The notes below the pieces were generated by a model. It ran no database searches. It saw only the letters and a program-made list of their open reading frames with translations, and was not told the origin of the DNA. This document shows positions 1 through 47,610 of a stretch of DNA of 64,000 nucleotides, in pieces. This DNA is from Mytilus edulis (Eukaryota): contig NC_092356.1 in assembly GCF_963676685.1 (NCBI RefSeq), positions 61,814,001 through 61,878,000 on the forward strand, written 5' to 3'. The first letter of the stretch is position 1. Each line of letters starts with the position of its first letter. Position numbers and translations under genes: made by a program.

Positions 1-306
1 TGAGCACATGTTTAACATGTAAATTCAGATAATAGTTTATTTTAAGGACATCCATGCGTATTGCGATCACCGGATTTTTACGAGACGGGTCACACTGAGG
101 TCACTTAACATACGGAAAATATGTCGGGGAAATTGCTTCTTGGAACGAAAGCAATTAAAATAAAGTAAACTTCTTCTAAATATGAATAAATTAGAGAATT
201 TTCTTCAGAAAAAGGTATATGTACATAAGCTTTATAATGAAAACTATCCATTGAGTTATAAAAAAACATATGCATTATTTTTTTTTATTTGAGATTTCTT
301 ATGACT
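1..306. mobile_element. Right part of a TTAA MITE (same element as 45868-46441)
   Basis: Ends tttcttatgact|ttaa; near-identical to 46135-46441. Confidence 0.8.
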
Positions 307-1157
307 TTAACTGTCCTCAAGTGTTACAATTGCCTACCAGAATGTTTAATTAATACACACACGCCTTGTCCCTTGGTCTGAGTACAAACAGATTTTATTG
401 GTTTTTTTATTTATCCAAATAATTAGTGAGTATGCCCATACATGTAATAACTTGCATTTCGAAACAAATTATCTTATCGCCAATGTTGTTCATTCTTCAA
501 AATCACAACACCAGAGATATGATAACATTGCAACAAATGTTATTAATAAACAAATAAGCTTTATATTAATTCAAAATTGGTTCAAATTAAGAAGACACAA
601 TATAAATTCTTTATAGCCTTTGACTGCGAACATTAAGAGTTTAGGAGAAGTGCTATTCAATAAAGTACATTTGTGAATTGTAAAATGTATTTCGAAATGC
701 CTCCAAACATGATAGAATTTTGTGCTTAACAAATGATACACCAGTATTTTACATTGACTGTTTATCTGTAAAGGTTTACTCTGAGTATCGGTGAAATTTG
801 ATTATGCTAGAAGCCTAACAATATCTTCTGCTTTTTAATATTAAATGTGTGCCATAATTTGTAAACTAACTTATAATAAATTATTCTCACCTGTAATTCT
901 CATCGGAATTGTCTTCCTTTGCCTTTGCTGGTCTTTCACCTTTTGGTAGGAACCTTCAAGGATAAAAAATTTTGTTTTATATACATGTATATATATCTTT
1001 GGATCAAATTAAAATATGATTTTTCACTTATCATTCTATATTATTCGTTTTTGCTTTATTGAGCATTTTATCACTTTTATTTGTAAGAAAGGGAAAAACA
1101 TTTATCCAAACCCACAGAACATAAATTGCAATGCATTAGAAGGTAGACACTAATAAT

Positions 1158-1450
1158 TAACAAGAATGTGTAAATAGTACACGGTTGTCTCACTCGCTCT
1201 ATTATATTCTATGTTCAGTGGACCTGACATTTGGGCCAAAACTCTAATTCGGCATAAAAAATTAGAAAGATTATATCATAGGAAACATGCCGTCCGGTCT
1301 AAGTTACAAGTTGATTGGACTTCAACTTCATCAACAACTATATTGCCAAAATATTTAACCTGAAGCTGGACAGATGAATAGACTTACAAACGGATGAATG
1401 AAGGAGGGACGCACAGACCAAAAAATCATAAGGCCAATAAATGGAAACTA
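1158..1450. mobile_element. Short decayed Helentron-type (pearl/MgE-like) element; second copy at ~47288-47590
   Basis: Starts aacaagaatgtgt..gtacacgg, has one satellite monomer, a decayed GACG-type microsatellite and gacgcacagacca end; homologous to 58563-59585. Confidence 0.6.
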
Positions 1451-1468
1451 TGATTATAAACACTCTTT

Positions 1469-2456
1469 AAAACCAGGTGCTCCGCAGGGTGCAGCTTTAT
1501 ACGACCCCAGTGGTTGAACCCTGAACAGTTGGGACAAATTTGGTCACAATATTCAAGCTTGATTCTGTCTGAATTTGGATTGTGATCAAATTTTTGAAAT
1601 AATATAGGTTTTTGTCACAAAATTAATGTGGTCAAAGATCTAACAAATCTATTGCACAATACTGTGCAATTGAAGATTTCTTCTTGAAACTTTTCAGAAT
1701 TCGAAATTTGAAGCCCTTCAAAAAATGGTAAACAAACCCCCCCCCCCCCCCCCAACTTTTTGAAACCCCCTTGGAGTAATAACCCTTAAACTCAATCCCA
1801 TGCTTTCCATTGCAGTATTGAACCTTGTAGTACAATTTCAGAGAGATCCATACACTTAAACACAGGTTATTGTCATGATTGTTTGGAAACTAGGAACATG
1901 CTTCTTTTTGGCCCTTTTTTTGGCCCCTAATTCCTACATATCTTGGGCAATTAACCCAAAACTTAATCCCTGCCTCCCCTTTTTTATATGGTACATTGTG
2001 GTACAATTTTAGAGAGATCCATACAATTACACATAAGTTATTGTCTTGAAACTAGAAAAATGCTTGTTTTGACCCCTTTTTGGCCCTTAATTCCTAAACA
2101 TTGGCCCCATAACCCCTAAAATGAATCCAAACCTTTTACTTGTGGTTTTAAACATTGCGGTATGATTTCAGAGCAATTGAAATACTTCTACACAATTTAT
2201 TATCCTGAAACTAGTAAAATGCTTGTTTTGGGCCCCTTTTGGGCCCCTAATTCCTAATCGGTTGTGACCATCATCCCCAAAATCAATCCCAACCTTCCTC
2301 TTGTGGTATTGAACCTTCTGAAAAAATTTCATGAAGATCTATTCACTTAAACTAAAGTTATTATCCCGAAACCAATGTGTCTTCGGACGACGACGACGCA
2401 GACAACGACATCATACCATTATACGATCCCAAAATTTTTTTGGGGTCATATAAAAA
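1469..2456. mobile_element. Helentron-type non-autonomous element with ~160-bp internal tandem repeats
   Basis: Present in units 1 and 3, absent from units 2 and 4; inserted in an A-run; (GAC)n microsatellite and terminal hairpin near the right end. Confidence 0.7.
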
Positions 2457-3261
2457 TCTGTATTAACCTGGTTGTATCATCATCTGACTCATCACTGTCT
2501 GATTCAAACAAGGCAGAGAACTCTTCCTTTTCTGCAGCTGTGGCCGTCTGAAGTACTTTGGGTCCTTTTGGTCTTTCAATAATCGGTATATTTGCCTCAG
2601 CCTTAGAGAGTCCCTAAAATATAAAAGCGTATTGTTTATTTGGAATCATTACAATTGCTGTATTGATTATGATAGATGTATGATGCAGGGAAAACATGCA
2701 GAAGAGAACAAAGTCAGTTTTATTTTATATCTTTATCAGATATACCAATTTGATGGTAGATTATAATTTCAGCAATTCGTTTAATACAAGTTGATATTTG
2801 AGATAATGATATATCAGGAATTGTAGTATTAGAAACTTCTGGATCGTTCTATAATTAATGCATATCATTACCACTTTCATCATAAAAAGTTCTGATATTT
2901 ATTTGAATATATATTAAACTGTTAAAAGCGTAAAAACAAAACGTTCTGTTTAATACAAGGACTGTAGTCCAAATTTACAAATTAAAAAAAGACCCTGTTA
3001 ATTGTAATATGAAGGAACATTATGAGGTGAACAAAACTAGTGTCCTATTTTGATTAACCTGCATCTGGATTCTTAACAAATTCTTATCATTAGCTGACCT
3101 GTTCTTAAGCAGCAATCTGGTACTGCAATTCTCTGTCTCGTAGCTTCCTCCATGTGGTGAAGTATTTACCTAATGGAGTACCAATATTCTTACACTGTTG
3201 TTCCCATGCTGTCTGTAAAAGAGTAGAATTATAATTGTTTAAATTATTTCATTTAGTTTGT

Positions 3262-3560
3262 ATACAACTACTACAACAAGATGTTCACAAAGTATAAATA
3301 CACCAACAACAACACCATTTACACCAAGTATAAATATATCAACAACAACAAGATCTTCACCGATAATGCATAAATGAACAATGACTATAGCTCCACCAAG
3401 TATAAATACATGATCAACAAGATTATTTCCAAGCACAACATTAGTAAGATCTTCTCTTAGTATAAATACATCAACAAAAAGATCATCACAAAATGCAAAT
3501 TTATATACATCAACAACAACAAGATCTTCAGAAATTACAAATGAATCAAACGCAACAAGG
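3262..3560. repeat. Degenerate ~33-36-bp CAA-rich minisatellite beside a NOC2L splice acceptor (also ~22977-23275, ~49405-49700, ~59812-60110)
   Basis: Recurring aagtataaatacatcaacaacaacaagatcttc. Confidence 0.75.
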
Positions 3561-4939
3561 ATATATTATTTTTGGCAAATTTCCAATGGAATTTATTAAT
3601 AACTAAGTTTTTGGCAAATTTCCAATATACTTAATTTAAGAGCAGTTTAGGTGAGCTATTAAAATGAGTTTCAATTACCGACCTTACACTGCTTTTAAAT
3701 TATGTTTTGTACTTAAGTAATTGTCCATTAACCTGGAAACCCTTTTCCCCCCTTTTTTGCACCTTATTCCAACGGTTTTAATAACCGGTCCTAAATATTA
3801 AAAATCTAAATACATGGTTAGATTCAGCATATTGAAGAACCCCATATATTGAATTTTTGTTGAAATCAAACAGTTTAATTTTGGACCCAGATTTGACCAA
3901 CTTGAAAACTCAGCCCATAATCAAAAAACTAAGTACATGTTTAGATTCAGCATATCAAAGAACCCCAAGAATTCAATTTTTGTTATAATCAAACTAAGTT
4001 TAATTTTGGACCTTAATGTAATCCAATTTGAAAACGGGACCAAAAATTAAGAATCTAAATACACGGTTAGATTCGGTATATCAAAGAACCCCAATAGTTC
4101 AATTTTTGATGAAATGAAACAAAGTTTAATTTTGGACCCTTTTGGCCCCTAATGCGTTGGGACCAAAACTCCCAAATCAATCCAAACCTTCCTTTTGTGG
4201 TCATAAACCTTGTGTTTAAATTTTCATAGATTTCTATTAACTTATACTAAAGTTATTTTGCAAAAACCAAGAAAAATGCTTATTTTGGGACCTGTTTTTG
4301 GCCCTAAACTATTGGGATTTAAACTCCCAAAATCAATCCCAACCTTCTTTTTGTGGTCAAAGACCTTCTGTTAAAAATTCATAGATTTCTGTTTACTTAT
4401 TCTAAAGTTATTGTGCGAAAACCAAGAAAAATGCTTATTTGGGCTCTTTTCGGCCCCTTATTCCTAAACTGTTGGGACCATAACACCCAAAATCAATCCC
4501 AACCTTCCTTTTATCATCATAAACCTTGTGTTTAAATTTCATAGATTTCTATCTATGACGCCAAAGTGATACCAATATACAACCAAAAATTTTTCAATTT
4601 TTGCGTTCGTATAAAAACAACATGTAAACATTTAATGCGTCCGAGGCATTTTTCTGGATTAACCTTCATGTGGAAGCTTCAAAGCCGAATATTTGAAAGC
4701 CAAAGATGCATAAAACAGAAACATTTTAAGAGCTATTTAATAAAAAAAAATTCCTAAAATAATAGCCAAATCCTTGACCTTCTAAGGCCAACTCAGCCTG
4801 ATGGAGTTCAAACCTGATTGAGTTTCTTTAATAATGAATACAAAATTTATAAACAGGCAAATTTAGAAAGGTTCTTTGTTATTCACGGCAGTTCAAAAGA
4901 GCTGATTTCTGATCTCATGGTACCCTCTGGAACTGATCC

Positions 4940-5134
4940 AATATAGCGGGTTATTTTCGCGGGTGTAAAATCTCGTTGAATAAGGTATACAAAATATTTT
5001 GGCAGTTATTAATTTTGCGGAATTAAAACTTTTATCAATACCTTTGCATGTACATTTATAATTTGACGATTTTGTTCTACCCGCAAAAATAATTAAAAAA
5101 TTTACAACCCACAAAAATTACCCGCTATACAGTA
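4940..5134. mobile_element. ~190-bp TIR MITE (also ~25748-25928, ~51060-51257, ~62620-62815)
   Basis: tatagcgggttattttcgcgggtgtaaa ... tttacaacccacaaaaattacccgctatacagta inverted ends. Confidence 0.7.
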
Positions 5135-5974
5135 GTCCACCTGAAGATGTATTAACCCAGTGATGTAACAAAGTGTATAAATGTAATGCGCCACTCACAA
5201 GTGCTTTTCTGGATTAACCTTGATCAGGAACACTTAATCCTCTTTTTGAAAAGTACAGTGGTGTGAACAACATATGTTGAACTGTTAAAAGAAGCATATT
5301 CTAGTTTCTAATTCGTTGAACTTTCTTAGCAAGAAATATTGGAAAGTTGAAACCAAGTAGAAATAAGAATAAATATTGCCAATAAAATGCCTGAACCACC
5401 TGAATAATATTTGGTCTGTTGCCTCTTTATTTTGGTATCTGGTCTGTTGATTATAGATACGATTCTCAAATTTATGGACTACTTTGAGTGTAAATCATAC
5501 TAGTCTTTTTATTTCAAAACCCATCCCTGATTTTACCCTGTTCTAATCTAATTGAGTTGTCCTTCATTGAACAGAAAATTGCAGTTCTTCATTGAAATAG
5601 TCAAATACAAAATTTCTATCAAAATTTAGGTTAGGAAAATGAATAGTTTGTATGTTTTTTTTAACTTAGCACTTAGCATGGATTCAAAATGGTTTCTACC
5701 TTTAAATTATGATATAGCCTATGAGATTTAAATAAATAAATATATAGATGTTATTTGGTTTTTCATGTCAATGAGATGCTCATGATCACTATCTAAATTC
5801 CTATTAGTCAATATTTACATTTATTCATATAGTTAATATAACACAAGATAATTTTAACTAAATACATTTAAATTGTAAACATTGTAAAGATAAGATAGTA
5901 AAGCAATTCAAACATTGCTATTTATAGACGTTGGGCACAAGGAAGTAAAAAAATCAATTCAGACATCTTTAAAA

Positions 5975-7216
5975 ATGGCCTTTGCAAGTTCTTTACAAAA
6001 AGGACAAATTCCAGTAGGATGTGAAATATGCCAAGGTAAAAATAAGATTGAATTCAAATGTCTGGACTGTAACATTTTAATGTGCAGTGGCTGCAAAGAT
6101 AGAGTCCACTTAAAAATTGCAAAAGATCATCAGATAACAGATATAAAAGAAATAGGAAAACGTGTTATTTTCAGTGAAATTAAGTGTGAACACCATACAG
6201 GACAAGCATGCTGCCTTTTCTGTCAAACATGTAAAACATTTATCTGTCTGAAGTGTGTAGCTAAAGTTCATAATGGACACGAGTTGATTGAAGAAGAAGA
6301 CTATAATGAAGGCAAAGTAGAAATGAAGCCAAAACAGCAGAGTAAGATTGAGTTTGAAATATCCAAAGAATATACAACAGATCTTACCTCTATTCACAAT
6401 ATAGCAGTATGTTCTGATGGTACTATGTGGATGGGGGATAATGCCAGATCAAAGTTACAACATGTCAAACTTAAAGAGAATAGAACTGAAGTAATAACAA
6501 GTCAAAACACTAAGATTTATGGAATGGCAAAAACTCATTCAAATAACATTCTTGTTACAACAGATGTGACCAAACTCAAACTAATCAACACTATGACAGG
6601 ACAGATGACAGATTCCAGGTATGATGTAACACCATTGTATCCAGTCAGTATCCATGTAACCAGTGATCACAGGGTCATCATAGGAGCCAAGACTGGAGGT
6701 AAACCATTCCCTGCCACAGGAAGACGTGTAGTGGTGGTAATGGATCAGGAAGGAAAACAACTAAAGGAATATGAACATGACAAACATAACAAACGATTAT
6801 TCACCTACCCTCGACGTGTAACAAGTACCAGTAATGGTAACATCTGTGTGGTGGACATGTTAGATAATGATGGCAGAGGTAGAGTGATAGTGTTATCACC
6901 AGGAGGAGACGTAGTAGGGGTATACACTGGTCACCCTGATGTCAACACTGAGGAGAAACCATTTAAACCTCATGGAATACTTACAACACCATCAGATAAT
7001 ATTGTTCTTACAGATATGGACAATCATTTATTACATATACTGACTGACCAAGGACAAAGTATTACCTACTACAACCTCAGTGACATGGGGATCTTATATC
7101 CATTCTACCTATCTCTGTCAACATCAGGAACTATCTATATTGGATGTACTAGTAAAGCAGGAAGTCCAGACACTACAAAGGCCAAACTTTATGAGTTGGA
7201 ATATTCTGGAATCTAG
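5975..7216 (+). CDS. B-box/B-box + NHL-like beta-propeller protein (TRIM-NHL-like, no RING or coiled coil), 413 aa, nested antisense in a NOC2L intron
   Basis: ATG at 5975 (the ORF-track start is a TTG; likely splice acceptor tttatag at 5927). Zn motifs CEIC..CLDC..CSGC..H..H and CEHH..CQTC..CLKC..HNGH, followed by NHL-like repeats (e.g. FTYPRRVTSTSNGNICVVD, FKPHGILTTPSDNIVLTD). Confidence 0.92.
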   Translation: MAFASSLQKGQIPVGCEICQGKNKIEFKCLDCNILMCSGCKDRVHLKIAKDHQITDIKEIGKRVIFSEIKCEHHTGQACCLFCQTCKTFICLKCVAKVHNGHELIEEEDYNEGKVEMKPKQQSKIEFEISKEYTTDLTSIHNIAVCSDGTMWMGDNARSKLQHVKLKENRTEVITSQNTKIYGMAKTHSNNILVTTDVTKLKLINTMTGQMTDSRYDVTPLYPVSIHVTSDHRVIIGAKTGGKPFPATGRRVVVVMDQEGKQLKEYEHDKHNKRLFTYPRRVTSTSNGNICVVDMLDNDGRGRVIVLSPGGDVVGVYTGHPDVNTEEKPFKPHGILTTPSDNIVLTDMDNHLLHILTDQGQSITYYNLSDMGILYPFYLSLSTSGTIYIGCTSKAGSPDTTKAKLYELEYSGI

Positions 7217-9209
7217 TGGTCACAAGGTCCAAAACAAAATTGATAAAAGACCTGATAGCAAACGAAATGGATTTGGAAGAACTGATATACTGAGAAATAA
7301 AAGGACAGACCAAACAGAATTTGACAAATTAATCTCTAAGAATTAAAGAACAAACGGATATATATTGTAAGCATATTTATCATTTTTGTAATACGATAGT
7401 TCACAAGGTGACACTACATGACAAGTCACTCTAGCCAGACACATTTTACTTAGCCATCACTACTAAATTCAGGTTGATTACCTGATAGGCAGCAAAGACC
7501 AAGTTTTAATTATCACCTGACATGAGCATACTACCAAGAGACACAAATTAGCTATAAATTCATGAGCTTCAATATTTTTATGTTAAACAAATACAAATAC
7601 AAATAATTTTATTTTGCAATGAGCGCCCCAAAGGAGCAGAAATATAACAACTTACAATAGCTTTGTCATCTGAGATACTGAAGGACACAGATTTTCTCCT
7701 GTCTGTAATAAACTTTGATGTCTCCTGAACTTTATCCACTATCTGTTTTATTTGTTTACAGTAGTTTGCTATTTTACATTTCTTCAGGAATTCCTTCATC
7801 TGAAATTCATACAATTAATATTTTTTTTACAATTTCAAAGAAAAAAGTAATTAATCTTTTGCAGATTTTGATAATGTATATAATGCAGTAGCAGTAAAAT
7901 TATTTTTCTTTGCATTATTAACAAATGCAGTGTGTTTACACTTTTAAATTATATGTTAAATTAATAACAAATGTCAAAAACAATTTATGTGGTTTTCTGG
8001 TTTGTATTGTTTCATATTGGGTTGAGGTGGAGCCTTTAATAGATGACTATACAGTATGTGTTTTGCTCATTGTTAAAGGCCATACAGTAAACTATAGTTG
8101 CATTAAGGCACATTATTTGGACATGGGTCGATACATTTTACACATAGAATATTTCTATGATATCTATTTGTTACATAATAAAAAATATACACCTCTTGCA
8201 AAAATATTCAATAATAATTGTTGTGTATTGTTTTCCATATTCATTAGGAATAGATGGTCTTTTTCAAAAGAGAGTTCCTGTCATCTTTTTTTATATAAGT
8301 ACTGATCAGATGATTATATAAAAAAAAATCGTAAGGTTTCCGCTGAACCCACTGTCTATCGCCTACTTTTTTTTTTTTTACAAAATTTACTTCTGGATAC
8401 TGTCTTTATGATCATAGACAAGGTTCTGCTCAATTTTGGTAGAAATCCAGGACAGTTTAAGAAAGTTGTTAACATTTCAAAAACTTTAACCACAGAGTGA
8501 ATATTTGTGGACTCTGCTGCTGCTGCCGAAGGAATGTAGGATCGCTATGTCTTGCTTTTTCGACAAAATTCACAAGCAACTAAAAGAGATAATTCAGGAT
8601 ATTAATTATCAACCATGAATATTTGACAATAAATGAAAACTTGTTGAATTATAAAGTTTGAAGCATCATTCAACAAATTTGAAATATAGAAAAATAGCCC
8701 TTATTAAACTACCTGAAGTATTGATGGTAAAACCAGTTCAGGAAAACCAATCTTATGAGCATGGATGTTAAAATGGTCCATAAATAGTTCATATAACTGG
8801 TCAATGATGCCATCCTGAAAAATAATGTTACAGTTACCTCCCTTTGTACAGACAATACACAAAGCAAATCTTAAAAGTGTAAAAAAACAAACATTTATTA
8901 TTGACATAAATATTCAGCGAATAAATAAAAATATATACATAAACAGTGATACATATTGAGAGTTCTTCTGACTGATAATTTATGATTTTCTAAGGTCTGC
9001 TTTTATATGTAGATATTGCTGTATTAAGACTGTATTCACTACATTTGGTTAGCTTATTAGCATTTCATCAGTTGTATATAGTATTGATGTTATTTAAGTT
9101 TGTACATAGTGTGCTGTGTTTTATTATAATTTCGTATATGACTCGCTTCTTTGGCTTTGTAAACAACACCTTGATAAAATTATCGATATATCAAATTATC
9201 AATACTTAT

Positions 9210-9643
9210 TTTTGTCCATCTGATGAGTTAAGCCTTTTTCAACTGATTTTTATAGTTTGTTCTTATGTTGTACTGTTATACCACTGTCCCAGGTTAGGGG
9301 AGGGTTGGGATCCCGCTAACATGTTTAACCCCGCCACATTATTTATGTATGTGCCTGTCCCAAGTCAGGAGCCTGTAATTCAGTGGTTGTGACACGTTTG
9401 TTTATGTGTTACATATTTGTTTTTCGATCGTTCATTTTTTTATATAAATAAGGCCGTCAGTTTTCTCGTTTGAATTGTTTTACAATGTCTTATCGGGGCC
9501 TTTTATAGCTGACAATGCGGTATGGGCTTTGCTCATTGTTGAAGGCCGTACGGTGACCTATAGTTGTTAATGTCTGTGTCATTTTGGTCTCTTGTGGGCA
9601 GTTGTTTCATTGGCAATCATACCACATCTTCTTTTTTTTATAT
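9210..9643 (+). mobile_element. Abundant interspersed repeat, probable Penelope-like 3' terminal fragment (also ~30068-30502; reversed at ~39165-39460)
   Basis: Three well-conserved copies in two orientations; homologous to the distal non-coding part of the RT-like relic at 18560-19670. Confidence 0.55.
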
Positions 9644-10387
9644 TAGCTAAACTTAGCGCAGACTAAGAGATATAAATAATAATGGATGTTAAAATATACA
9701 TGTACCTCTTACATAAATCCACATGTATCAAAACCTATTTGCAATTTATTAGAATGTTTAATTACTAAGCTTTATCTAACAGGGAGTAAAAAGGAACAGA
9801 CACATAGTGCTTTATTATAAGATTTAATTAGCTTAGATTGTGTGTTTAACTTTGGTTTGTTAACATTTAGTTTGCAATGAAATTGTCGAATTCTCCTAAA
9901 TATGTTTTTCATGTGTTGTAATAATCTGGTAGTTCTCATAAGATCAATCTAATTGCAGAAACATCTTTATCTCATTAATATAATCAAAAGTATTTCTTAA
10001 TATTTTTGTATTTTGTTCATAATCCTCAATTAACAATACTACAAAATGTATGAGTAAATAATTCTAGATCTGAGGCAAGATACAACTTAGAATGCATGAG
10101 GTTCTAGGACAGGATGATCTCTAATGTCAAAAAATACTTTCATGAAGCCCGTTATTCAAATAAAATTATAATTCAATTCATTAATAAAAAATAATATTTT
10201 TTAAACAACAATGTGTTACCTTAAAGGATTTCTCCACCAGCTGTGCTTTAGATAACTTCAAAATACAGGCAAAATTCAATGGTTTGAAACTGATACTTTT
10301 ATGCTTCTTGTTGAAGTCTGTCAGCTCAAAAACCTGCAAATAAATATTTTCAATACATTGTTTATTTTTTTTAAAAGGTCACATGTC

Positions 10388-10905
10388 AATGTTAATTATA
10401 TGGTAAAGTATCACTATGAGTTATCTCCCTTATGAATGTATCACTGAGTCAAAACACGAGTTATCTCCCTTATAAATGTTAATTATATGGTAAAGTATCA
10501 CTAAGTCAAAACTTAACGAGTTATCTCCCTTATAAATGTTAATTATATGGCAAAGTATCATTAATCTCCCTTATGAATGTATCACTGAGTCAAAACACGA
10601 GTTATCTCCCTTATAAATGTTAATTATATGGTAAAGTATCACTAAGTCAAAACTTAACGAGTTATCTCCCTTATAAATGTTAATTATATGGCAAAGTATC
10701 ATTAAGTCAAAACTCAATGAGTTATCTCCCTTATAAATGTTAATAATATGGTAAAGTATCACTTAGTCAAAACACAACGAGTTATCTCCCTTGTATATGT
10801 TAATTATATGGTAAAGTATTACTACGTCAAAACACGATTTATCTCCATTATAAATGTTGGTATCACAAAGTCAAAGAACAAGGAGTATTCTCCCTTATGA
10901 ATTAA
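10388..10905. repeat. 60-bp tandem repeat just 5' of the first retained NOC2L exon (shorter array at ~31248-31560)
   Basis: gagttatctcccttataaatgttaattatatggtaaagtatcac recurs at 10458, 10518, 10599, 10659, 10719, 10779. Confidence 0.9.
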
Positions 10906-23100: not shown

Positions 23101-26100
23101 TATAGCTCCACCAAGTATAAATACATGATCAACAAGATCATCTCCAAGCACAACATTAGTAAGGTCTTCTCTTAGTATAAATACATCAACAAAAAGATCA
23201 TCACAAAATGCAAATTTATATACATCAACAACAACAAGATCTTCAGAAATTACAAATGAATCAAACGCAACAAGGATATATTATTCCCTAAATAAAATGC
23301 TTTTAACTTTGGATAGACACCTATATTTTGTTGTTTTAAACATATTTGTAAGCAATATATAAAATATATATAAACCAGATGCACCACAGGGTGCAGCTTT
23401 ATACAACCGCAGAGGTCAAACCCTGAACGGTTGGGGCTAGTATGGACACAACATTCAAACTGGATACAGCTCTGATTTTGGATTGTGATTAAATAGTTGA
23501 CACAGCATAGGGTTTATGACACAGAAAGAATGTGGTCTAATGAACTTAAAATGTTTTTTTTTGCTTTTGAGCAATCCACTATGCTGTTGAATATTAATCC
23601 TTTGATATTTGAAGAAATTTTCTTTTTCATTTGAAAGAAAAATTGAACCCCACTAATTTTTTTCACCTTCCCCTTTCCCTTATTCCAAATATGATCTCAA
23701 TTCAAATTTCTAATGGAGTTTTCAACAATAACTACTCATTTAAATACATCATAAAATATAAAATGTCATACAGTCATGATTTAAGTTGATTTGACTACTA
23801 TTATTAAGAAAGATAACTCCAATGCAACATTTTATATTGGTAAATTTCCAATGAAGTTCATTTAAGGTGGTACCCAACACTTTAACTAAAATCAATTTGG
23901 CTCATCTAATTTTCTTAAAATTTTGACAAAGTATTTACTTTGACCCTTTCACAAAAATATAAAAATTTCAAAAAATTTGAACCAATCGTTTTATCAGAAA
24001 AATTACACTGGTTATATAGCAGTTTGACAAACACTTATTTTGATCATTGGGAAGCTTGATATTCCTTTAACAACACAACATATAAAAACGTTAAGCTGAT
24101 TTTACAGAGTTATCTCCCTGTAGTGTTAGGTACCACCTTAACTAAAGTTTTTGGCAAATTTCCAATGGAATTTATTAATAACTAAGTTTTTGGCAAATTT
24201 CCAATATACATAATTTAAGAGCAGTTTAGGTGAGCTATTAAAATGAGTTTCAATTACCGACCTTACACTGCTTTTAAATTATGTTTTGTACTTAAGTAAT
24301 TGTCCATTAACCTGGAAACCCTTTTCCCCCCTTTTTTGCACCTTATTCCAACGGTTTGAGCCATAACTCCCAAAGACAATTCTTACCATGGCTTTGTGGT
24401 ATCCCAATATCCAAAATCTAAATACATGGTTAGATTCATCATATCAAAGAACCCCAAGAATTCAATTTTTGATGAAATCAAATAAAGTTCAATTTTGGAC
24501 CCTTTAAACCTCAATGTGGACCAATTTGATAACCGGTCCTAAATATCAAAAATCTAAATACATGGTTAGATTCAGCATATTGAAGACCCCATATATTGAA
24601 TTTTTGTTGAAATCAAACAAAGTTTAATTTTGGACCCAGATTTGACCAACTTGAAAACTCAGCCCATAATAAAAAAACTAAGTACATGTTTAGATTCAGC
24701 ATATCAAAGAACCCCAAGAATTCAATTTTTGTTAAAATCAAACTAAGTTTAATTTTGGACCTTAATGTAGACCAATTTGAAAACGGGACCAAAAATTAAG
24801 AATCTAAATACACGGTCAGATTCGGTATATCAAAGAACCCCAATAGTTCAATTTTTGATGAAATGAAACAAAGTATAATTTTGGACCCTTTTGGCCCCTA
24901 ATGCGTTGGGACCAAAACTCCCAAATCAATCCAAACCTTCCTTTTGTGGTCATAAACCTTGTGTTTAAATTTTCATAGATTTCTATTAACTTATACTAAA
25001 GTTATTTTGCAAAAACCAAGAAAAATGCTTATTTTGGGACCTGTTTTTGGCCCTAAACTATTGGGATTTAAACTCCCAAAATCAATCCCAACCTTCTTTT
25101 TGTGGTCATAGACCTTATGTTAAAATTTCATAGATTTCTGTTTACTTATTCTAAAGTTATTGTGCGAAAACCAAGAAAAATGCTTATTTGGGCTCTTTCA
25201 GCCCCTTATTCCTAAACTGTTGGGACCATAACACCCAAAATCAATCCCAACCTTCCTTTTATCATCATAAACCTTGTGTTTAAATTTCATAGATTTCTAT
25301 CTACTTTTACTAAAGTTAGAGTGCGAAAACCAAATGTGTTCGGACGAAGACAACGACGACCATGACGCCAACGTGATACCAATATACAACCAAAAAAAAT
25401 TTAATTTTTGCGTTCGTATAAAAACAACATGTAAACATTTAATGCGTCCGAAGCATTATTCTGGATTAACCTTCATGTGGAAGCCTCAAAGCCGAATATT
25501 TGAAAGCCAAAGATGCATAAAACAGAAACATTTTAAGAGCTATTTAATAAAAAAAATTACCTAAAGTAATAGCCAAATCCTTGACCTTCTAAGGCCAACT
25601 CAGCCTGATGGAGTTCAAACCTGATTGAGTTTCTTTAATAATGAATACAAAATTTATAAACAGGCAAATTTAGAAAGGTTCTTTGTTATTCATGGCAGTT
25701 CAAAAGTGCTGATTTCTGATCTCATGGTACCCTCTGGAACTGATCCAATATAGCGGGTGTAAAATTTCATTGAATGAGGTATACGAAATATTTTGGCAGT
25801 TATTAATTTTGCGGAATTAAAACTTTTATCAATACCTTTGCATGTACATTTATAATTTGACGATTTTGTTCTACCCGCAAAAATAATTTAAAAATTTACA
25901 ACCCGCAAAAATAGCCCGCTATACAGTAGTCCACCTGAAGAGGTATTAACCCAGTGATGTAACAAAGTGTATAAATGTAATGCCTCACAAGTGCTTTTCT
26001 GGATTAACCTTCATCAGGAACACTTAATCCGCTTTTTGAAAAGTACAGTGGTGTGAACAACATATGAATGAACTGTTAAAAGAAGCATATTCTAGTTTCT

Positions 26101-29100
26101 AATTCGTTGAACTTTCTTAGTAAGAAATATTGGAAAGTTGAAACCAGGTAGAAATAAGAATAAATATTGCCAATTAAATGCTTGAACCACCTGAATAATA
26201 TTTGGTCTGTTGCCTCTTTATTTTGGTATCTGGTCTGTTGATTATAGATACGATTCTCAAATTTATGGACTACTTTGAGTGTAAATCATACTAGTCTTTT
26301 TATTTCAAAACCCATCCCTCATTTAACCCTGTTCTAATCTAATTAAATTGTCCTTCTTTGAACAGAAAATTGCAGTTCTTCATTGAAATAGTCAAATACA
26401 AAATTTCTATCAAAATTTAGGTTAGGAAAATGAATCGTTTGTATGTTTTTCAACTTAGCACTTAGCATGGATTCAAAATGGTTTCTACCTTTAAATTATG
26501 ATATAGCCTATGAGATTTAAATAAATAAATATATAGATGTCATTTGGTTTGTCATGTCAATGAGATGCTCATGATCACTATCTAAATTCCTATTAGTCAA
26601 TATTTACATTTATTCATATAGTCAATATAATACAAGATAATTTTAACTAAATACATTTAAATTGTAAACATAGTAAAGATAAGATAGTAAAGCAATTCAA
26701 ACATTGCTATTTATAGACGTTGGGCACAAGGAATGTTAAAAATCAATTCAGACATCTTTAAAAATGGCCTTTGCAAGTTCTTTACAAAAAGGACAATTTC
26801 CAGTGGGATGTGAAATATGCCAAGATAAAAATAAGATTGAATTCAAATGTCTGGACTGTAACATTTTAATGTGCAGTGGTTGCAAAGATAGAGTTCACTT
26901 AAAAATTGCAAAAGATCATCAGATAACTGATATAAAGGATATAGGTAAACAACATGTTACTTTCAGTGAAATCAAGTGTGAAAACCATACAGGACAGGCA
27001 TGCTGCCTTTTCTGTCAAACATGTAAAACATTTATCTGTCCAAAGTGTGTAGCTAAAGTTCATAATGGACATGACTTGATAGAAGAAGAAGACTACAATG
27101 AAGGCAAAGTAGAAACTAAGCCAAAACAGAAGAGTAAGATTAAGTTTGAAATATTGAAAGAATATACAACAGATCTTAACTCTATTCACTTTATACCAGT
27201 ATGTACTGGTGGTTCTATGTGGATGGGGGATCAGCTCGAATCAAAGTTACAACATATCAAACTTAGGGAGAATAGAACTGAAGTAATAACAAGTCTCAAC
27301 ATTGAGATTTGGGGAATGGCAAAAACTCATTCAAATAACATTCTTGTTATAGTACAGCATGGGACTAAACTCAAACTAATCAACACCATGACAGGACAGA
27401 TGACAGATTCCAGGTATGATGTAACACCATTGATAGCAACCTGTATCCATGTGACCAGTGATCATAGAGTCATCATAGGAGCCCATCCTGGAGGTAAAGC
27501 ATTCCCTGCCACAGGACGACGTGTAGTGGTGGTAATGGATCAGGAAGGAAAACAACTCAAGGAATATGAACATGATAAACAGAATAAACGATTATTTACC
27601 CTCCCGATATGTGTAACTACTACCAGCAATGGTAACATCTGTGTGGTGGACGTGTTAGATGATGATCGCAGAGGTAGAGTGGTAGTGTTATCGCCAGGAG
27701 GAGGCGTACTAGGGGTATACACTGGTCACCACGATGTCAACACCAGGGAGAAACTATTTATACCTGATGGAATACTAACAACACCGTCAGATAATATTGT
27801 TGTTACTGATATGAACAATCATTTATTGCACATACTGACTGACCAAGGACAAAGTATTACCTACTATAATCTGCATGACATGGGAATCTTATATCCAAAC
27901 TCCCTTGCCCTGTCGACATCAGGAACTATCTATATAGGATGTGTTAGTAAAGAAGGAAGTCCAAAAACTACAAAGGCTAAACTTTATGAGTTGGAATATT
28001 CTGGAATCTAGTGGTCACAAGGTCCAAAACAAAATTGATAAAAGACCTGATAGAAAACGAAATGGATTTGGAAGAACTGATATACTGAGAAATAAAAGGA
28101 CAGACCAAACATTATTGGACAAATTAATCTCTAAGAATTATAGAACAAACGGATATACATTGTAAGCATATTTATCATTTTTGTAATATAATAGTTCACA
28201 AGGTGACAGTACATGACAAGTCACTCTAGCCAGACACATTTTACTTAGCCATCACTACTATATTCAGGTTGATTACCTGATAGGCAGCAAAGACCAAGTT
28301 GATTATCACCTGACATGAGCATACTACCAAGAGACACAAATTAGCTATAAATTCATGAGCTTCAATATTTTTATGTTAAACAAATACAAATACAAATAAT
28401 TTTATTTTGCAATGAGCGCCCCAAAGGAGCAGAAATATAACAACTTACAATAGCTTTATCATCTGAGATACTGAAGGACACAGATTTTCTCCTGTCTGTT
28501 ATAAACTTTGATGTCTCCTGAACTTTATCCACTATCTGTTTTATTTGTTTACAGTAGTTTGCTATTTTACATTTCTTCAGGAATTCCTTCATCTGAAATT
28601 CATACAATTAATATTTTTTCTATAATTTCAAAGAAAAAAGTAATTAATCTTTTGCAGATTTTGATAATGTATATAATGCAGTAGTAGTAAAATTATTATT
28701 CTTTGCATTATTAACAAATGTGTTTACAGTTTTAAATTATATGTTAAATTAATAGCAAATGTCAATCAAAGAGCAGATTGCTCTGAGAGATACCATAGGC
28801 GGATCCAGGGGGGGCCTGGGGGGCCAGGGCCCCCCCTTTCGTGGGAAAAATTTGGTTCATTATATAGGGAATCATTGAAGCATGACTGGAGCGGGCCCCC
28901 CTTAGGAAAAGTTCTGGATCCGCCACTGGATAAAATTGCCATTCTACTTCTACCGGTTAGTGACCACCGTCATCATGTGGACTATATATATTCTGTCACT
29001 TTTGGGTGTGCGCAAAAATAATTTTAATTAAAATATCAAACAAAAACAAAAAGGTGCTATACAAATATTTAACAGTGGGGATTAATGTATTAGTATTATT

Positions 29101-31192
29101 TTCAAAAATAATTCAACTGCACGTGTGAAATGCTCGTAAAATTTAATTTACGTAATCTGAATAGTTATGTTTACTTGCAGAAAAACTAAGTCCATTTAAT
29201 CAAATACGGAAAAAAATGATTTTTTTTCTCACAAAATTTACTTCTGGATACTGTCTTATGATCATAGACAAGGTTCTGCTCAAGTTTGGCAGAAATCCAG
29301 GTCAGTTTAAGAAAGTTGTTAACATTTCAAAACTTTAACCACAGAGTGAATATTTGTGGACTCTGCTGCTGCCGATGGAATGTAGGATCCCTATGTTTTG
29401 CTTTTTCAACAAAATTCACAAGCAACTAAAAGAGATAATTCAGGATATTAATTATCAACAATGAATATTTGACCATAAATGGAAACTTGTTGAATTATAA
29501 AGTCTGAAGCATCATTCAACAAATTTGAAATATAAAAAAATAGCCCTTATTAAACTACCTGAAGTATTGATGGTAAAACCAGTTCAGGAAAACCAATCTT
29601 ATGAGCATGGATGTTAAAATGGTCCATAAATAGTTCATATAACTGGTCAATGATGCCATCCTGAAAAAAAATGTTAAAGTTACCTCCCTTTGTACAGACA
29701 ATACACAAAGTAAATCTTAAAAGTGTAAAAAAACTAACATGTATCCCTGACAGAAATATTCCGCAAATTAATAAGAATATATACATAAACAGTGATAAAT
29801 ATTGAGAGTTGTTCTGACTGATAATTTATGATTTTCTAAGGTCTGTTTTTATATGTAGATATTGCTGTATTATATAAGACTGTTTATAATATTCACTACA
29901 TTTGGTTAGCTTATTAGCATTTCATCAGTTGTATATAGTATTGATGTTATTTAAGTTTGTACATAGTGTGCTGTGTTTTATTATAATTTCGTATATGACT
30001 CGCTTCTTTGGCTTTGTAAACAACACCTTGATAAAATTATCGATATATCAAATTATCAATACTTAGTTTTGTCCATCTGATGAGTTAAGCCTTTTTCAAC
30101 TGATTTTTATAGTTTGTTCTTATGTTGTACTGTTATACCACTGTCCCAGGTTAGGGGGAGGGTTGGGATCCCGCTAACATGTTTAACCCTGCCACATTAT
30201 TTATGTATGTGCCTGTCCCAAGTCAGGAGCCTGTAATTCAGTGGTTGTGACACGTTTGTTTATGTGTTACATATTTGTTTTTCGATCGTTCATTTTTTTA
30301 TATAAATAAGGCCGTCAGTTTTCTCGTTTGAATTGTTTTACAATGTCTTATCGGGGCCTTTTATAGCTGACTATGCGGTATGGGCTTTGCTAATTGTTGA
30401 AGGATGTACGGTGACCTATAGTTGTTAATTTCTGTGTCATTTTGGTCTCTTGTGGACAGTTGTCTCATTGGCAATCATACCACATCTTCTTTTTTTTTAT
30501 ATTAGCTATACTTAGCGCAGACTCAGAGATATAAATAATAATGGATGTTAACATATACATGTACCTCTTACATAAATCCACATGTATTAGAACCTATTTG
30601 CAATTTATTAGAATGTTTCCTAAGCTTGATCTTACAGAGAGTAAAAAGGAACAGACACATAGTGCTTTATTATAAGATTTAATTAGCTTAGATTGTGTGT
30701 TTAACTTTGGTTTGTAAACATTTAGTTTGCAATGAAATTGTAGAATTCTCCTAAATATGTTGTTTTTCATGTGTTGTAATAATCTGGTAGTTCTTATATG
30801 AAGATCAATTTAATTGCAGAAACATCTTTATCACAGTAATATAATCAAAAGTATTTCTTATATTTTTGTATTTTGTTCATAATCCTCAATTAACAATACT
30901 ACAAAATGTATGAGTAAATAATTCTACATCTGAGGCAAGATACAACCCAGAATGCATCAGGTTCTAGGATAGGATGATCTCTAATGTCAAAAAATACTTT
31001 CATGAAGCCCGATAATTCAAATAAATTATAATTCAATTGATTAATAAAAAAATAATATTTTAAAACAAAATGTGTTACCTTAAAGGATTTCTCCACCAGC
31101 TGTGCTTTAGATAACTTCAGAATACAGGCAAAATTCAATGGTTTGAAACTGATACTTTTATGCTTCTTGTTGAAGTCTGTCAGCTCAAAAAC
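20132..31192 (-). CDS. NOC2L: NOC2L 3' portion, unit 2. Seven intact exons: 31079-31192, 29559-29660, 28449-28592, 22814-22927, 22186-22331, 21672-21734, 20132-20366 (acidic tail, stop). Apparently 5'-truncated
   Basis: Exon sizes 114/102/144/114/146/63/235, all GT-AG, open frame to ...KEFTMSDSD*. No further NOC2L exons recognised in 31193-44078. Confidence 0.85.
21907..22136. mobile_element. ~230-bp MITE in units 2 and 4 (second copy ~57724-57953)
   Basis: aaggggtctcattgg ... ccgaattagacccactt imperfect TIRs; no counterpart in units 1 and 3. Confidence 0.6.
23372..25424. mobile_element. Helentron-type element with ~123-bp and ~158-bp internal tandem arrays (copies ~3570-4617 and ~49798-50740 internally deleted; ~60207-62280)
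   Basis: 5' end aaaccagatgcaccacagggtgcagctttatac shared with the 1469 element; repeats aaatacatggttagattcagcatat and aaatcaatcccaaccttcc; GAC microsatellite and hairpin at the end. Confidence 0.65.
23866..24137. mobile_element. 272-bp TTAA MITE (GG..CC termini, Kolobok-like) nested in the Helentron-type element
   Basis: ttaa|ggtggtacccaacac ... gtgttaggtaccacc|ttaa; absent at the equivalent site in unit 3 (~50306). Confidence 0.85.
25982..26023 (-). ncRNA. Degenerate hammerhead-like motif of a second family (also ~5189-5232, ~51311-51352, ~62869-62910)
   Basis: Minus strand GUGUUC CUGAUGA AGGUUAAUCCA GAAA AGCACU UG: core boxes present, cleavage triplet and stem I damaged. Confidence 0.45.
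26764..28011 (+). CDS. B-box/B-box + NHL-like beta-propeller protein paralog, 415 aa
   Basis: Intact ORF, roughly 84% amino-acid identity to 5975-7216 by manual count, same nested position. Confidence 0.92.
   Translation: MAFASSLQKGQFPVGCEICQDKNKIEFKCLDCNILMCSGCKDRVHLKIAKDHQITDIKDIGKQHVTFSEIKCENHTGQACCLFCQTCKTFICPKCVAKVHNGHDLIEEEDYNEGKVETKPKQKSKIKFEILKEYTTDLNSIHFIPVCTGGSMWMGDQLESKLQHIKLRENRTEVITSLNIEIWGMAKTHSNNILVIVQHGTKLKLINTMTGQMTDSRYDVTPLIATCIHVTSDHRVIIGAHPGGKAFPATGRRVVVVMDQEGKQLKEYEHDKQNKRLFTLPICVTTTSNGNICVVDVLDDDRRGRVVVLSPGGGVLGVYTGHHDVNTREKLFIPDGILTTPSDNIVVTDMNNHLLHILTDQGQSITYYNLHDMGILYPNSLALSTSGTIYIGCVSKEGSPKTTKAKLYELEYSGI
28794..28928. mobile_element. Small GC-rich MITE (related decayed copy ~36789-36922)
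   Basis: cataggcggatccag ... ctggatccgccactg TIRs; no convincing TSD. Confidence 0.65.
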
Positions 31193-33024
31193 CTGCAAAT
31201 AAATATTTTTAATACATAGTTTATGATTCTTAACAGGTCACATGTCAATGTTAATTATATGGTAAAGTATCACTATGAGTTATCTCCCTTATGAATGTAT
31301 CACTGAATCAAAACACGAGTTATCTCCTTTATAAATGTTAATTATATGGTAAAGTATCACTAAGTCAAAACGCAACGAGTTATCTCCCTGATAAATGTTA
31401 ATTATATGGTAAAGTATCACTGTCAAAACACAAGGAATTATCTCTCTAATAAGTGTTAATTATATGGTAAGGTATCACTAAGTCAAAACACGAGTTATCT
31501 TCATTATAAATGTTAGTATCACACAGTCAAAGAACAAGGAGTTATCTCTCTTATGAATTAAAGTGATGAAAAATTAGTGATCTCCCTTCTTTAACAAATG
31601 ATTTAATAAGTAATTTGTTTCAAACTCAGATTGTTTCCATTTTTACTATTTCATTTTGTATCATTTGTACCATATCAATTTGTATCATTTGTACTATACT
31701 ATTTTGTATTATGATTCATTTATAAATTGTCTATTTGTATTTCTTGTACTATCTTTTTGTTTCAAATGAGTTTGAAATTTTTTATCAAAATTAATGGTAA
31801 TGAGATTTAAGTAGGCAACCAATTTTACTCATAATAATTTTTGTCAAAAGAGTTCTTTTTTTGTATCACTATAAGAATCCAAATATATAGAAATTAGACC
31901 TCTACTAGGTACAGTCAGTGTATAGAAATTAGGATTCAGAAGCGGTACCAAAGTACACAGAAGACGGATCATTGAGGGTACAAGAAAGTAAAGACATTTT
32001 CTATTCAAGAAACTTTGATTATTTGTAAAAAGGACATTCCTCAATGAAATGATGAAGGCACTATATATAGACAACCCCTTATATCAATTAGCACAATGTG
32101 AAAATTGTCAATCATTGATGCTTTGTTTTGAGGAAACCAAATAAGTTATGGTCAGTTGTTAATCTATATGTTATAATATACTTTTAGTATTTATATATCT
32201 ATATTATATGTAAACAAATACATTTGTCTTGTAGGCACATTATTTATAATTAATTACGAGTGTTAATAAAAGTAGTTTGAAAAAATCAAATTTGCAACAT
32301 TTATTGACATAAAATATGAAAAGGCATTGTCATTTAAAAAGAACATCACAGAATCTCATAGTTTCTGCTATCTTTATCTCTAATATAACCTGAGCTGTTT
32401 GTATGATTTTGTTTTCAAATTAAACGAATAAAAGAAGCTGCCTGATAACATCAATGAAAATAGACACACACGCTAAAAATGCATGCACCCGACACGAATA
32501 AGTCAAGAATACTCAGTGTCGAATATTTGAAAGCCAATGATGCTTAAGAATCGAAATAGTTGAAGATCTATATGATCAAAATGAACCTAGAAAATTAACA
32601 AAATCCATTTAGACAGAAATGCAACAACACAGTACAAAAACCATCAACCGTTATGTTGTTGTCCAAGTTGTCTGGAATAATGATATTTGTTACAAACAAC
32701 TCGCCACGGGACGCTTTCATCAAAAATTGCAGTCTAGGCATTTGAAGTGTTTACAAATTATTTTAATTAAAGTTTACGTTGTAACATAATGCTTAAGATG
32801 TACAATGATATAGGTGAAATGTTATCACAACCAAAGCTATTATAGATCTAAAGATCCTGTACCAAGTCAAGAAAATGGAAGTTATTATCTCATAGTTATT
32901 TCTTTGTGTGTTGTATTGTCGTTAGATTTTTTTTTACACTTCAGTGTTCCGTTGTTTCGTTTTGTCCCTCTTATATTTGATGTGTTTCCCTCGAATTTAG
33001 TTTGAAATAAAGAACGAAAAGACG

Positions 33025-45867: not shown

Positions 45868-46441
45868 AGTCATAAGAAACAAGTGACCGGTGAAAAATAA
45901 TGTTCTTCCAATTCTTGAACCAATTCATACAAACATCATAAACTTAGTCTTCTGTTCAAGAATGTTTCATTTTGTCGCATAAATTTCGTATAATTGTCAA
46001 TTTTTTTTCAATCAGTCAGACGTGTTGTTGTGAAATATGGCAGGTAATTAAAGTTCGTGTTTTGAAGCCGAAGTTTAACGATTGTCACCTGTTTGTCAAC
46101 AATCAACAAAAAATCAACAAAAAAGCATGGAAATTGAGCACGTGTTTAACATGTAAATTCAGATAATAGTTTATTTTAAGGACATCCATGCGTATTGCAA
46201 TCACCGGATTTTTACGAGACGGGTCACACTGAGGTCACTTAACATACGGAAAATATGTCGGGGAAATTGCTTCTTGGTAAGAAAGCAATTAAAATAAAGT
46301 AAACTTCTTCTAAATATGAATAAATTAAAGAATTTTCTTCAAAAAAAGGTATATGTACATATGCTTTATAATGAAAACTATCCATTGAGTTATAAAAAAA
46401 CATATGCGTTATTTTTTTTTAATTTGAGATTTCTTATGACT
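45868..46441. mobile_element. 574-bp MITE with TTAA target duplication and AG..CT termini (Kolobok-like)
   Basis: ttaa|agtcataagaaa ... tttcttatgact|ttaa; empty site ggtg-ttaa-ctgtcc in unit 4 (~56485). Confidence 0.85.
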
Positions 46442-47610
46442 TTAACTGTCCTCAAGTGTTACAATTGCCTACCAGAATGTTTAATTAATACACACTCGCC
46501 TTGTCCCTTGGTCTGAGTACAAACAGATTTTATTGGTTTTTTTATTTATCCAAATAATTAGTGAGTATGCCCATACATGTAATAACTTGCATTTCGAAAC
46601 AAATTATCTTATCGCCAATGTTGTTCATTCTTCTAAATCACAACACCAGAGATATGATAACATTGCAACAAATGTTATTAATAAACAAATAAGCTTTATA
46701 TTAAGTCAAAATTGGTTCAAAATAAGAAGACACAATATAAATTCTTTATAGCCTTTGACTGTGAACATTAAGAGTTTAGGAGAAGTGCTATTCAATAAAG
46801 TACATTTGTGAATTGTAAAATGTATTTCGAAATGCCTCCAAACATGATAGAATTTTGTGCTTAACAAATGATACACCAGTATGCTACATTGATCTGTAAA
46901 GGTTTACTCTGAGTATCGGTGAAATTTGATTATGCTAGAAGCCTAACAATATTTTCTGCTTTTTAATATTAAATGTGTGCCATAATTTGTAAACTAACTT
47001 ATAATAAATTATTCTCACCTGTAATTCTCATCGGAATTGTCTTCCTTTGCCTTTGCTGGTCTTTCACCTTTTGGTAGGAACCTTCAAGGATAAAAGAATT
47101 TTGTTTTATATACATGTATATATATCTTTGGATCAAATTAAAATATGATTTTTTCACTTATCATTCTGTATTATTCGTTTTTGCTTTATTGAGCATTTTA
47201 TCACTTTTATTTGTAAGAAAGGGAAAAACATTTATCCAAACCCACAGAACATAAATTGCAATGCATTAGAAGGTAGACACTAATAATTAACAAGAATGTG
47301 TAAATAGTACACGGTTGTCTCACTCGCTCTATTATATTCTATGTTCAGTGGACCTGACATTTGGGCCAAAACTCTAATTCGGCATAAAAAATTAAAAAGA
47401 TTATATCATAGGAAACATGCCGTCCGGTCTAAGTTACAAGTTGATTGGACTTCAACTTCATCAACAACTATATTGCCAAAATATTTAACCTGAAGCTGGA
47501 CAGACGAATAGACTTACAAACGGATGAATGAAGGAGGGACGCACAGACCAGAAAATCATAAGGCCAATAAATTGGCCAATAAATGGAAACTATGATTATA
47601 AACACTCTTT

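Follow-up and report, generated by a model that had tools for sequence, protein, structure and literature searches.

We have found that a subset of codons on the top face of an NHL propeller encoded in a Mytilus edulis tandem array evolves with omega above 1, while the scaffold, the bottom loops and the B-boxes of the same protein are under purifying selection. The sharp contrast in divergence between this coding sequence and the DNA around it, seen at positions 6380-7216 of the window (the whole 64-kb stretch of DNA that was analysed), is mainly due to exchange among paralogs, and selection on one face of the propeller holds beside it. We consider it likely that exchange of coding sequence among paralogs and diversifying selection on top-face codons act together. 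A coding sequence (CDS) that is more divergent than its flank is, taken alone, no evidence of selection.

Methods
Mismatch rates between the first two gene copies were obtained from a MAFFT alignment of 4555-7977 with 25362-28765. Site models were fitted with our own codon-model code (GY94, F3x4), in which branch lengths were fixed from M0 and posteriors were of the NEB type. M7 converged poorly, its lnL falling below that of M1a, and reliance was placed on the M1a/M2a and M8a/M8 comparisons. A GENECONV-style run on the whole CDS was discarded, since the diverged N-terminus inflates its result.

Array layout and transcription
The window is gapless and holds a tandem array. By self-BLAST, 4555-7977 aligns with 25362-28765, at 93.7% identity over 3434 nt with the CDS included, and with 62218-64000. 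Two intact genes and the start of a third lie within it (c1, c2 and c3; Table 1), and an older copy, c0, lies outside the window, 19 kb upstream of c1. The units are spaced 20.8 and 36.9 kb apart, are unequal in structure, carry copy-specific insertions and include one that is gene-less. Beyond the window, the CDS of c3 is interrupted after residue ~196 by an insertion of ~1.47 kb with a 13-nt target-site duplication and an ORF that has a weak zf-RVT match. In a genome search the flank DNA was confined to the neighbourhood of copies 1, 2 and 3 and to a single occurrence in the gene-less unit; it is single-copy array DNA and not transposons, with the exception of a dispersed repeat of ~60 nt at about 7585-7650. 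The coding sequence belongs to a multigene family of at least 100 loci. Among the paralogs, L002 and c0 match annotated Mytilus edulis proteins at 100% identity, and all close homologues come from Mytilus, labelled "uncharacterized", TRIM2_3 or TRIM71-like.

Contigs from one RNA library cover 7222-8000 in the 3' flank at 98-99% identity, and the downstream flank (7217-7977) is probably the 3' UTR of c1; no such contigs were found on the 5' flank at 5303-5908. Contigs of this library also cover the CDS, at 92-97% identity, and these may come from sister copies. At the mapping threshold of 90% likeness, contigs of many paralogs coincide on the CDS.

Table 1. Features of the array and of gene copy 1, in window coordinates
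Feature	Position (nt)	Strand	Description	Basis
Copy 1 (c1)	CDS 5975-7216 (ATG 5975, stop 7216)	+	Intronless, intact, 413 aa; two B-boxes and a six-bladed NHL propeller	ORF list, Pfam, AF2, Foldseek
B-box 1 of c1	6020-6133	+	Residues 16-53	Pfam
B-box 2 of c1	6176-6289	+	Residues 68-105	Pfam
NHL propeller of c1	6353-7204	+	Residues 127-410	DSSP strands of the AF2 model, mapped to blades
Codons with posterior >0.95 for omega about 4 (22)	6362-7156; first bases 6362, 6389, 6398, 6443, 6473, 6512, 6563, 6566, 6644, 6689, 6704, 6806, 6857, 6872, 6950, 6953, 6971, 7016, 7019, 7097, 7103, 7154	+		M2a, blade-wise trees
Tract of raised c1/c2 divergence	about 6139-7183	+	Synonymous and non-synonymous; wholly within the CDS	
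Upstream flank of c1	4555-5974	+	Common to copies 2 and 3, ~3% divergence	
Downstream flank of c1	7217-7977	+	2.5% diverged from copy 2	
Duplicated segment, unit 2	25362-28765	+	Aligns with 4555-7977	
Copy 2 (c2)	CDS 26764-28011	+	Intronless, intact, 415 aa	
Copy 3 (c3)	63651-64000	+	Start only, cut by the window end; genomic loci L017 and L015	

Protein architecture
Pfam matches c1 to zf-B_box (PF00643, E=2.9e-10) in two stretches, to an ANCHR-like B-box (PF22586) and, above the cut-off, to NHL (PF01436); the Cys/His ligands of the B-boxes are invariant across 30 homologues. The AlphaFold2 (AF2) model, with a mean pLDDT of 83.7 and values of about 90-97 in the propeller, is made up of a pair of small zinc-finger modules, a linker some 20 residues long and 24 strands arranged as six four-stranded blades, the N-terminal strand (127-134) closing blade 6. 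Foldseek matched it best to the NHL domains of TRIM2, TRIM3, Thin, TRIM71/LIN-41 and Brat, with 7qrv (TRIM2) at the top (E=1.6e-16).

No RING family is among the Pfam matches of c1, whose protein begins directly with B-box 1 (Cys16) and whose reading frame extends no more than 27 codons 5' of the ATG, nor does one occur in the Pfam annotation of homologues of 413-417 aa from four other Mytilus species. There is likewise no coiled coil, B-box 2 and the propeller being separated by residues 107-126 only, a stretch that is modelled with a 6-residue helix and with pLDDT <50 for 113-123; larger relatives of 550-590 aa have about 130 extra residues at this position. The protein resembles the C-terminal half of a TRIM-NHL protein but lacks both RING and coiled coil, which are defining for that class. 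The sequence has no evident signal peptide, and the protein is presumably intracellular and cytosolic. The B-boxes may mediate assembly or signalling.

The d-a and b-c loops define the top surface of NHL domains, which is the RNA-binding platform in Brat (PMC4015489). In both c1 and c2, the top-loop residues comprise 12 K+R and 12 D+E, a net charge of 0 by residue count as distinct from surface potential; with a net charge of about 0, a Brat-like RNA platform is not indicated.

Divergence of coding and flanking DNA
Mismatches between c1 and c2 amount to 45/1401 (3.2%) in the upstream flank, 26/405 (6.4%) in the N-terminal part of the CDS, 100/837 (11.9%) in the propeller (6380-7216) and 19/754 (2.5%) downstream as far as 7977. 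The first-pass annotation had described the coding DNA as more divergent than its flanks, as it is (11.9% against 2.5-3.2%), and the downstream DNA at 7217-7650 as bearing only scattered differences, which were measured at 11/432 (2.5%). Its manual count of about 65 differing residues in 415, about 50 of them in the propeller, agrees with our recount of about 62 differing positions plus 2 indel residues, 52 in the propeller, and the patches that it listed (TSIHNIA/NSIHFIP, DNAR/DQLE, QNTKIY/LNIEIW, TTD-V/IVQHG, LYPVS/LIATC, AKT/AHP, YPRR/LPIC, PFKPH/LFIPD and YPFY/YPNS) are all present as written. The differences cluster beyond chance, because 35 of the 52 in the propeller are located in top-face loops or at adjoining strand ends, which account for 139 of its 287 positions (binomial p=0.005).

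The contrast extends to silent sites. By the NG86 method, the propellers of c1 and c2 have dS 0.201 and dN 0.117 (omega 0.58), and the N-terminal B-box part has dS 0.20 and dN 0.042. Synonymous sites differ at 46/260 vs 64/2155 for flank sites, about 7-fold (Fisher OR 7, p=3.8e-18), and selection on amino acids therefore cannot be the main cause of the divergence. The first-pass annotation had put the contrast down to selection and had named an equal rise in synonymous divergence as an outcome that would count against this; dS is in fact 0.20 in the coding sequence and 0.03 in the flanks, and the contrast gives no support of its own for selection. The rise in dS begins at the ATG, B-box 1 alone having synonymous differences at 5/31 (p=0.002). 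Synonymous differences are also clumped, with a run of 61 degenerate codons that has none (p=0.009). Where the rest of the family is invariant, c1 and c2 differ at 2.7% of sites, which equals the flank rate, and at family-variable sites they differ at 16.5%. Both states are present in other paralogs for 27 of the 39 single synonymous differences.

Exchange of coding sequence among paralogs
The flanks of c1, c2 and c3 are 3-4.5% apart, and their CDS have dS of 0.15-0.27 to one another. The older copy c0 served as calibration: its dS to c1-c3 (0.35-0.45) is about the same as its flank divergence (15-34%), which indicates that dS is not inflated in general. Paralog L002, located 1.26 Mb away on the other strand, has flank remnants that reach only 70-76% identity over some 260 nt. 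In B-box 1 it differs from c1-c3 with dS of 0.56-0.68; from B-box 2 onward it matches c-type sequence (dS 0.06-0.22), and in the propeller (0.12-0.16) it takes the central position in a star-like relation to c1, c2 and c3. Similarly, N-terminal dS between the c copies and a cluster at 71 Mb is saturated at 1.0-1.4 (>1.5 in B-box 1), and propeller dS is about 0.2, no higher than the c1/c2 value. An independent pair of paralogs, L006 and L009, which lie 347 kb apart in inverted orientation, has an upstream flank that is 1.45% diverged and a CDS that is 8.1% diverged. Coding and flank histories are thus decoupled in both directions, which points to exchange of coding sequence between paralogs (gene conversion). 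The exchange may be gene conversion in the strict sense.

Site patterns within the gene also conflict with one another. For the quartet of c1, c2, L002 and L010, the flank-consistent split is found at 7 sites and the conflicting splits at 16 and 15 (31:7), interleaved along the gene. Among purely synonymous codon columns of this quartet the ratio is 0 flank-consistent to 10 conflicting, whereas parallel mutation at dS of about 0.2 would be expected to yield about one conflicting silent site. The three splits of the quartet c1, c2, c3 and L002 score 15:10:13. Copy c2 and L010 have 26 consecutive silent polymorphic sites in common (global p=0.014). The PHI statistic for the whole CDS was reached in 0/2000 permutations and was significant within the propeller at p=0.02-0.04, and the use of blade-wise trees, whose topologies change, raised the M0 lnL from -6475.8 to -6198.5, a gain of 277. 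When PHI was restricted to third positions of the propeller, significance was lost (p=0.17), and the best shared fragment in a GENECONV-style test on all sites of the propeller was not significant either (global p=0.13).

No near-identical donor tract was found in this assembly for most c1/c2 differences, the closest paralog over the whole propeller being 91% identical. Long conversion tracts were considered and rejected: private changes are interspersed, and a runs test gave no clustering after neighbouring sites were collapsed. Interspersed private changes and the lack of a long donor indicate that tracts are very short or that many donors are unsampled. Shuffling of ready-made loop cassettes was likewise rejected as the main source of diversity, as most patch variants are unique to one paralog; new substitutions, besides shuffling, thus feed the diversity of the loops.

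The genes c1-c3 are members of a RING-less B-box/NHL-propeller family that is very large in Mytilus. It is hypothesized that short-tract interlocus gene conversion or recombination moves coding sequence between the members. Homologues elsewhere in the genome exist for the CDS alone, so that foreign sequence would enter nowhere else. The young duplicates c1, c2 and c3 would be pushed apart at synonymous and non-synonymous sites alike, and old copies with barely alignable flanks, such as L002 and the 71-Mb cluster, would be kept at a propeller dS of about 0.1-0.25, similar throughout the family. The simplest reading of this pattern would be a multigene family at conversion-mutation equilibrium. 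In addition, diversifying selection would target some 20-30 codons, spread over the d-a and b-c loops of every one of the six blades; these loops form the top face, with which known NHL domains bind their ligands.

Diversifying selection on the top face
The M0 omega of 0.55 agrees with that of the counting method. The site models, which had been proposed as a check on the paralogs, supported positive selection, with 2dlnL of 185.5 for M1a/M2a on one tree and of 178.7 for M8a/M8, and assigned an omega of about 4 to about 10% of sites. Recombination inflates such likelihood-ratio tests, and the six blade-wise trees, with which the M1a/M2a value is 150.4, reduce this effect without removing it. 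The B-boxes were used as a control (residues 1-126), and there omega is 0.14 for 86% of sites and the M1a/M2a 2dlnL is 0.00.

Mapping onto the predicted structure placed 19 of the 22 selected codons on top loops or adjoining strand ends, in all six blades (Fisher p=1.5e-4), with faces assigned by strand order in the model rather than by coordinates; they are not scattered. By the same strand order, the variable patches all fall in d-a or b-c loops or adjoining strand ends. Seventeen of the selected codons differ between c1 and c2. Among 15 paralogs, mean entropy is 1.03 in top loops, 0.63 in strands and 0.46 in bottom loops. The omega of the whole top face is about 0.8-1.2, which is not significantly above 1 (0.2-0.5 for sites elsewhere), and selection is thus confined to a subset of top-face sites.

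Sites chosen independently of these paralogs gave the same picture. When 18 hypervariable sites were picked from the proteins of other Mytilus species, 17 were on the top face, and in the present genes these 18 sites have dN of 0.4-1.4 vs a propeller dS of 0.12-0.20 (omega 2-7, p down to 1e-8) with ordinary local synonymous counts. In blade 1 (codon columns 144-180), c1 and c2 differ at 0/22 synonymous vs 14/86 non-synonymous sites (p=0.03). Of the earlier proposal of diversifying selection on one binding surface, the part that concerns the surface stands, with patches on one face and omega about 4 at about 10% of codons; selection as the sole cause of the divergence does not.

Alternative explanations
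Much of the pattern could also arise in the manner known from the MHC, if old CDS lineages with dS of about 0.2 were kept apart by balancing or diversifying selection while unequal crossing-over or conversion in the array had recently homogenised the ~20-kb flanks. From unit to unit, the divergence of the flanks is indeed patchy, at 0.6% for 9000-9500 beside 4.4-4.8%, with 8-20% further out, so exchange does occur in the flanks, and the raised dS from the ATG onward, including B-box 1, fits this explanation as well. For c1, c2 and c3 themselves, homogenisation of the flanks with selection shielding the CDS may be an alternative to exchange of coding sequence. Overall we judge an MHC-like history unlikely: tract ends would be needed at both CDS borders in all three copies, and it leaves unexplained both L002 and the 71-Mb cluster, with unrelated or barely alignable flanks and propellers as close to c1-c3 as these are to one another, and the inverted, distant pair L006/L009. 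The earlier reading, in which a recent duplication was followed by nothing but fast positive selection for new point mutations in the loops, draws on the excess of non-synonymous change in blade 1 and on the many unique patch variants. As the sole cause it is contradicted by gene-wide dS of 0.20 vs 0.03 in the flanks, by the synonymous states that recur in other paralogs and by the quartet conflicts at silent sites, and we regard it as very improbable.

Hypermutation limited to the CDS or to the transcript, whether methylation-driven, transcription-coupled or mediated by reverse transcription, finds some support in the lack of introns and in a very low CpG observed/expected ratio, 0.17-0.27 in the CDS vs 0.52 for the window. 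However, the 3' flank is covered by RNA-library contigs and yet is only 2.5% diverged, no more than 14 of 126 differences involve a CpG context, transitions and transversions stand in a ratio of about 1.1, like that of the flanks, and the substitution spectrum has no adenine bias of the kind looked for as DGR-like. Family-invariant sites that diverge at the flank rate and silent states held in common with third-party paralogs also argue against it, and there is little to recommend such a mutator. An assembly artefact, in which allelic haplotypes were placed in tandem and the supposed paralogs are really alleles, can hardly be credited. The heterozygosity range of Mytilus takes in about 3%, the level of flank divergence, but the window is gapless and the three units are unlike in structure and spacing, with copy-specific insertions and a gene-less unit; even if true, the hypervariability would persist as allelic variation.

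Discussion
The expansion of B-box genes in bivalves has been published (PMC8382680). Our literature search returned nothing specific on variable NHL domains in molluscs, and nothing on a hypervariable, positively selected NHL propeller surface or on NHL coding sequence decoupled from its flanks by paralog exchange. Exchange among paralogs combined with selection on the top face would make a clean case from nature in which concerted evolution works on one part of a domain and diversifying selection on another. Continual change of about 20 residues on one face is what a variable recognition protein would be expected to show, and the top face may bind a variable, perhaps pathogen-derived, ligand. 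If it does bind pathogen molecules, the family would represent a new kind of recognition repertoire in an animal without adaptive immunity. We put forward, tentatively and as something rather less likely than its opposite, a germline repertoire of hundreds of RING-less B-box/NHL proteins with the propeller as variable recognition module. Conversion would keep the scaffold near-identical at the DNA level across chromosomal clusters and so sustain exchange, and the twelve top-face loops would be renewed by diversifying selection. Such a class of intracellular variable receptors would be one undescribed for animals, analogous to fungal WD40 and plant LRR systems. The 22 named codons and the model structure provide a basis for loop-swap and binding experiments.

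At the MHC, the segments that encode the binding site diverge more than the non-coding DNA beside them, and their synonymous divergence is raised too, a pattern ascribed to balancing selection acting along with recombination or conversion. The mussel genes are alike in that coding sequence is more divergent than neighbouring non-coding DNA at silent sites too, but the MHC comparison is between alleles and ours between paralogs in a tandem array, and fold and compartment are unrelated.

The proteins closest in structure are the TRIM-NHL proteins (TRIM2, TRIM3, TRIM71/LIN-41, Brat, Mei-P26 and Thin), which have B-box zinc fingers followed by a six-bladed NHL propeller and provide the best structural matches. 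The mussel protein differs from them in lacking the RING, the filamin domain and the coiled coil, in whose place it has a linker of only some 20 residues. The top face of Brat is electropositive, whereas the mussel top loops have a net charge of about 0 by residue count. TRIM-NHL proteins are encoded by 3-5 conserved genes (PMC4015489), in contrast to the at least 100 loci of the mussel family, and their top face is under purifying selection whereas that of the mussel protein is under diversifying selection.

In primate TRIM5alpha and fish finTRIM, the antiviral TRIMs, the positively selected loops belong to the SPRY recognition domain. Expansion of the family and positive selection on B30.2/SPRY surface loops are the subject of two reports (PMC3845644, PMC3137616). 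The mussel genes are similar in forming an expanded, clustered B-box family with positively selected surface loops on a C-terminal recognition domain, but the module is an NHL propeller instead of SPRY, and RING and coiled coil are missing.

In its mode of evolution the family resembles not only MHC exons and TRIM5/finTRIM SPRY loops but also fungal WD40 non-self receptors and plant NLR clusters. In the WD40 repeats of fungal NWD/HET-E/D proteins and the LRRs of plant NLRs, exchange between paralogs keeps the repeat scaffold alike, and in each repeat a few positions, those on the side of the beta-propeller or solenoid that binds the ligand, are diversified by positive selection. The mussel genes would be similar in this, although the mussel protein has no NACHT or NB-ARC and its repeat is NHL, not WD40 or LRR. 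The blades within one mussel protein are not near-identical, so exchange takes place between genes rather than between repeats.

Array structure and decay of copies

Divergence between the duplicated segments bearing copies 1 and 2 (units 1 and 2) is uneven along their flanks (8500-10500 vs 29300-31300), falling to 0.6% at 9000-9500 against 4.4-4.8% in the adjacent stretches and reaching 8-20% past 11000. The best match of window positions 1-3570 is 46135-49712 (~1-2% divergence) rather than unit 2. Duplications that differ in age make up the array, giving it a mosaic structure of its own.

The CDS of copy 3, the array member cut by the window end, is interrupted after residue ~196 by an insertion with a 13-nt duplication (TTCTTGTTTCAAT) on both sides. 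The inserted DNA carries a minus-strand ORF of 356 aa with a weak zf-RVT match and is probably a 5'-truncated non-LTR retrotransposon. Copy 3, bearing this insertion within it, is therefore a pseudogene. The close paralogs L007, L014 and L012 are likewise pseudogenes, which could act as sequence donors despite their defects.

Features of the array and of related loci in genome G000
Feature	Position	Description
Tandem satellite	G000:C13:71085721-71087208 (L009:2812-3876)	period ~115 nt, at least 13 copies
Insertion in copy 3	L017 (stretch carrying copy 3):2089 to ~3553 (G000:C13:61878239-61879703, just past window end)	~1.47 kb
Close paralog L007	C13:71313708-71314940	internal stop codon or N-terminus missing
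Close paralog L014	C13:27541049-27542377	internal stop codon or N-terminus missing
Close paralog L012	C13:69448432-69449238	internal stop codon or N-terminus missing
~60-nt element, 3' flank of copy 1	window ~7585-7650	at least 25 loci, many chromosomes, 84-98% identity

Associated repeats, base composition and gene family

The tandem satellite lies immediately 3' of the paralog L009 and derives from the final ~103 nt of the NHL gene CDS; shorter arrays adjoin paralog L010, locus L013 and C9:69799446. The ~60-nt element is a short dispersed repeat.

CpG observed/expected is 0.17-0.27 in the CDSs of copies 1 and 2 (5975-7216 and 26764-28011) vs 0.52 over the window, a depletion that suggests germline gene-body methylation.

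More than 100 further B-box/NHL loci occur on chromosomes C3, C4, C9 and C10 (e.g., C10:1.55-1.57 Mb and C3:31.8-33.0 Mb). The initial genome search yielded 1602 candidates, 101 of them scored. The majority of the further loci have an ORF of 550-590 aa, in which ~130 additional residues separate the B-boxes from the propeller.
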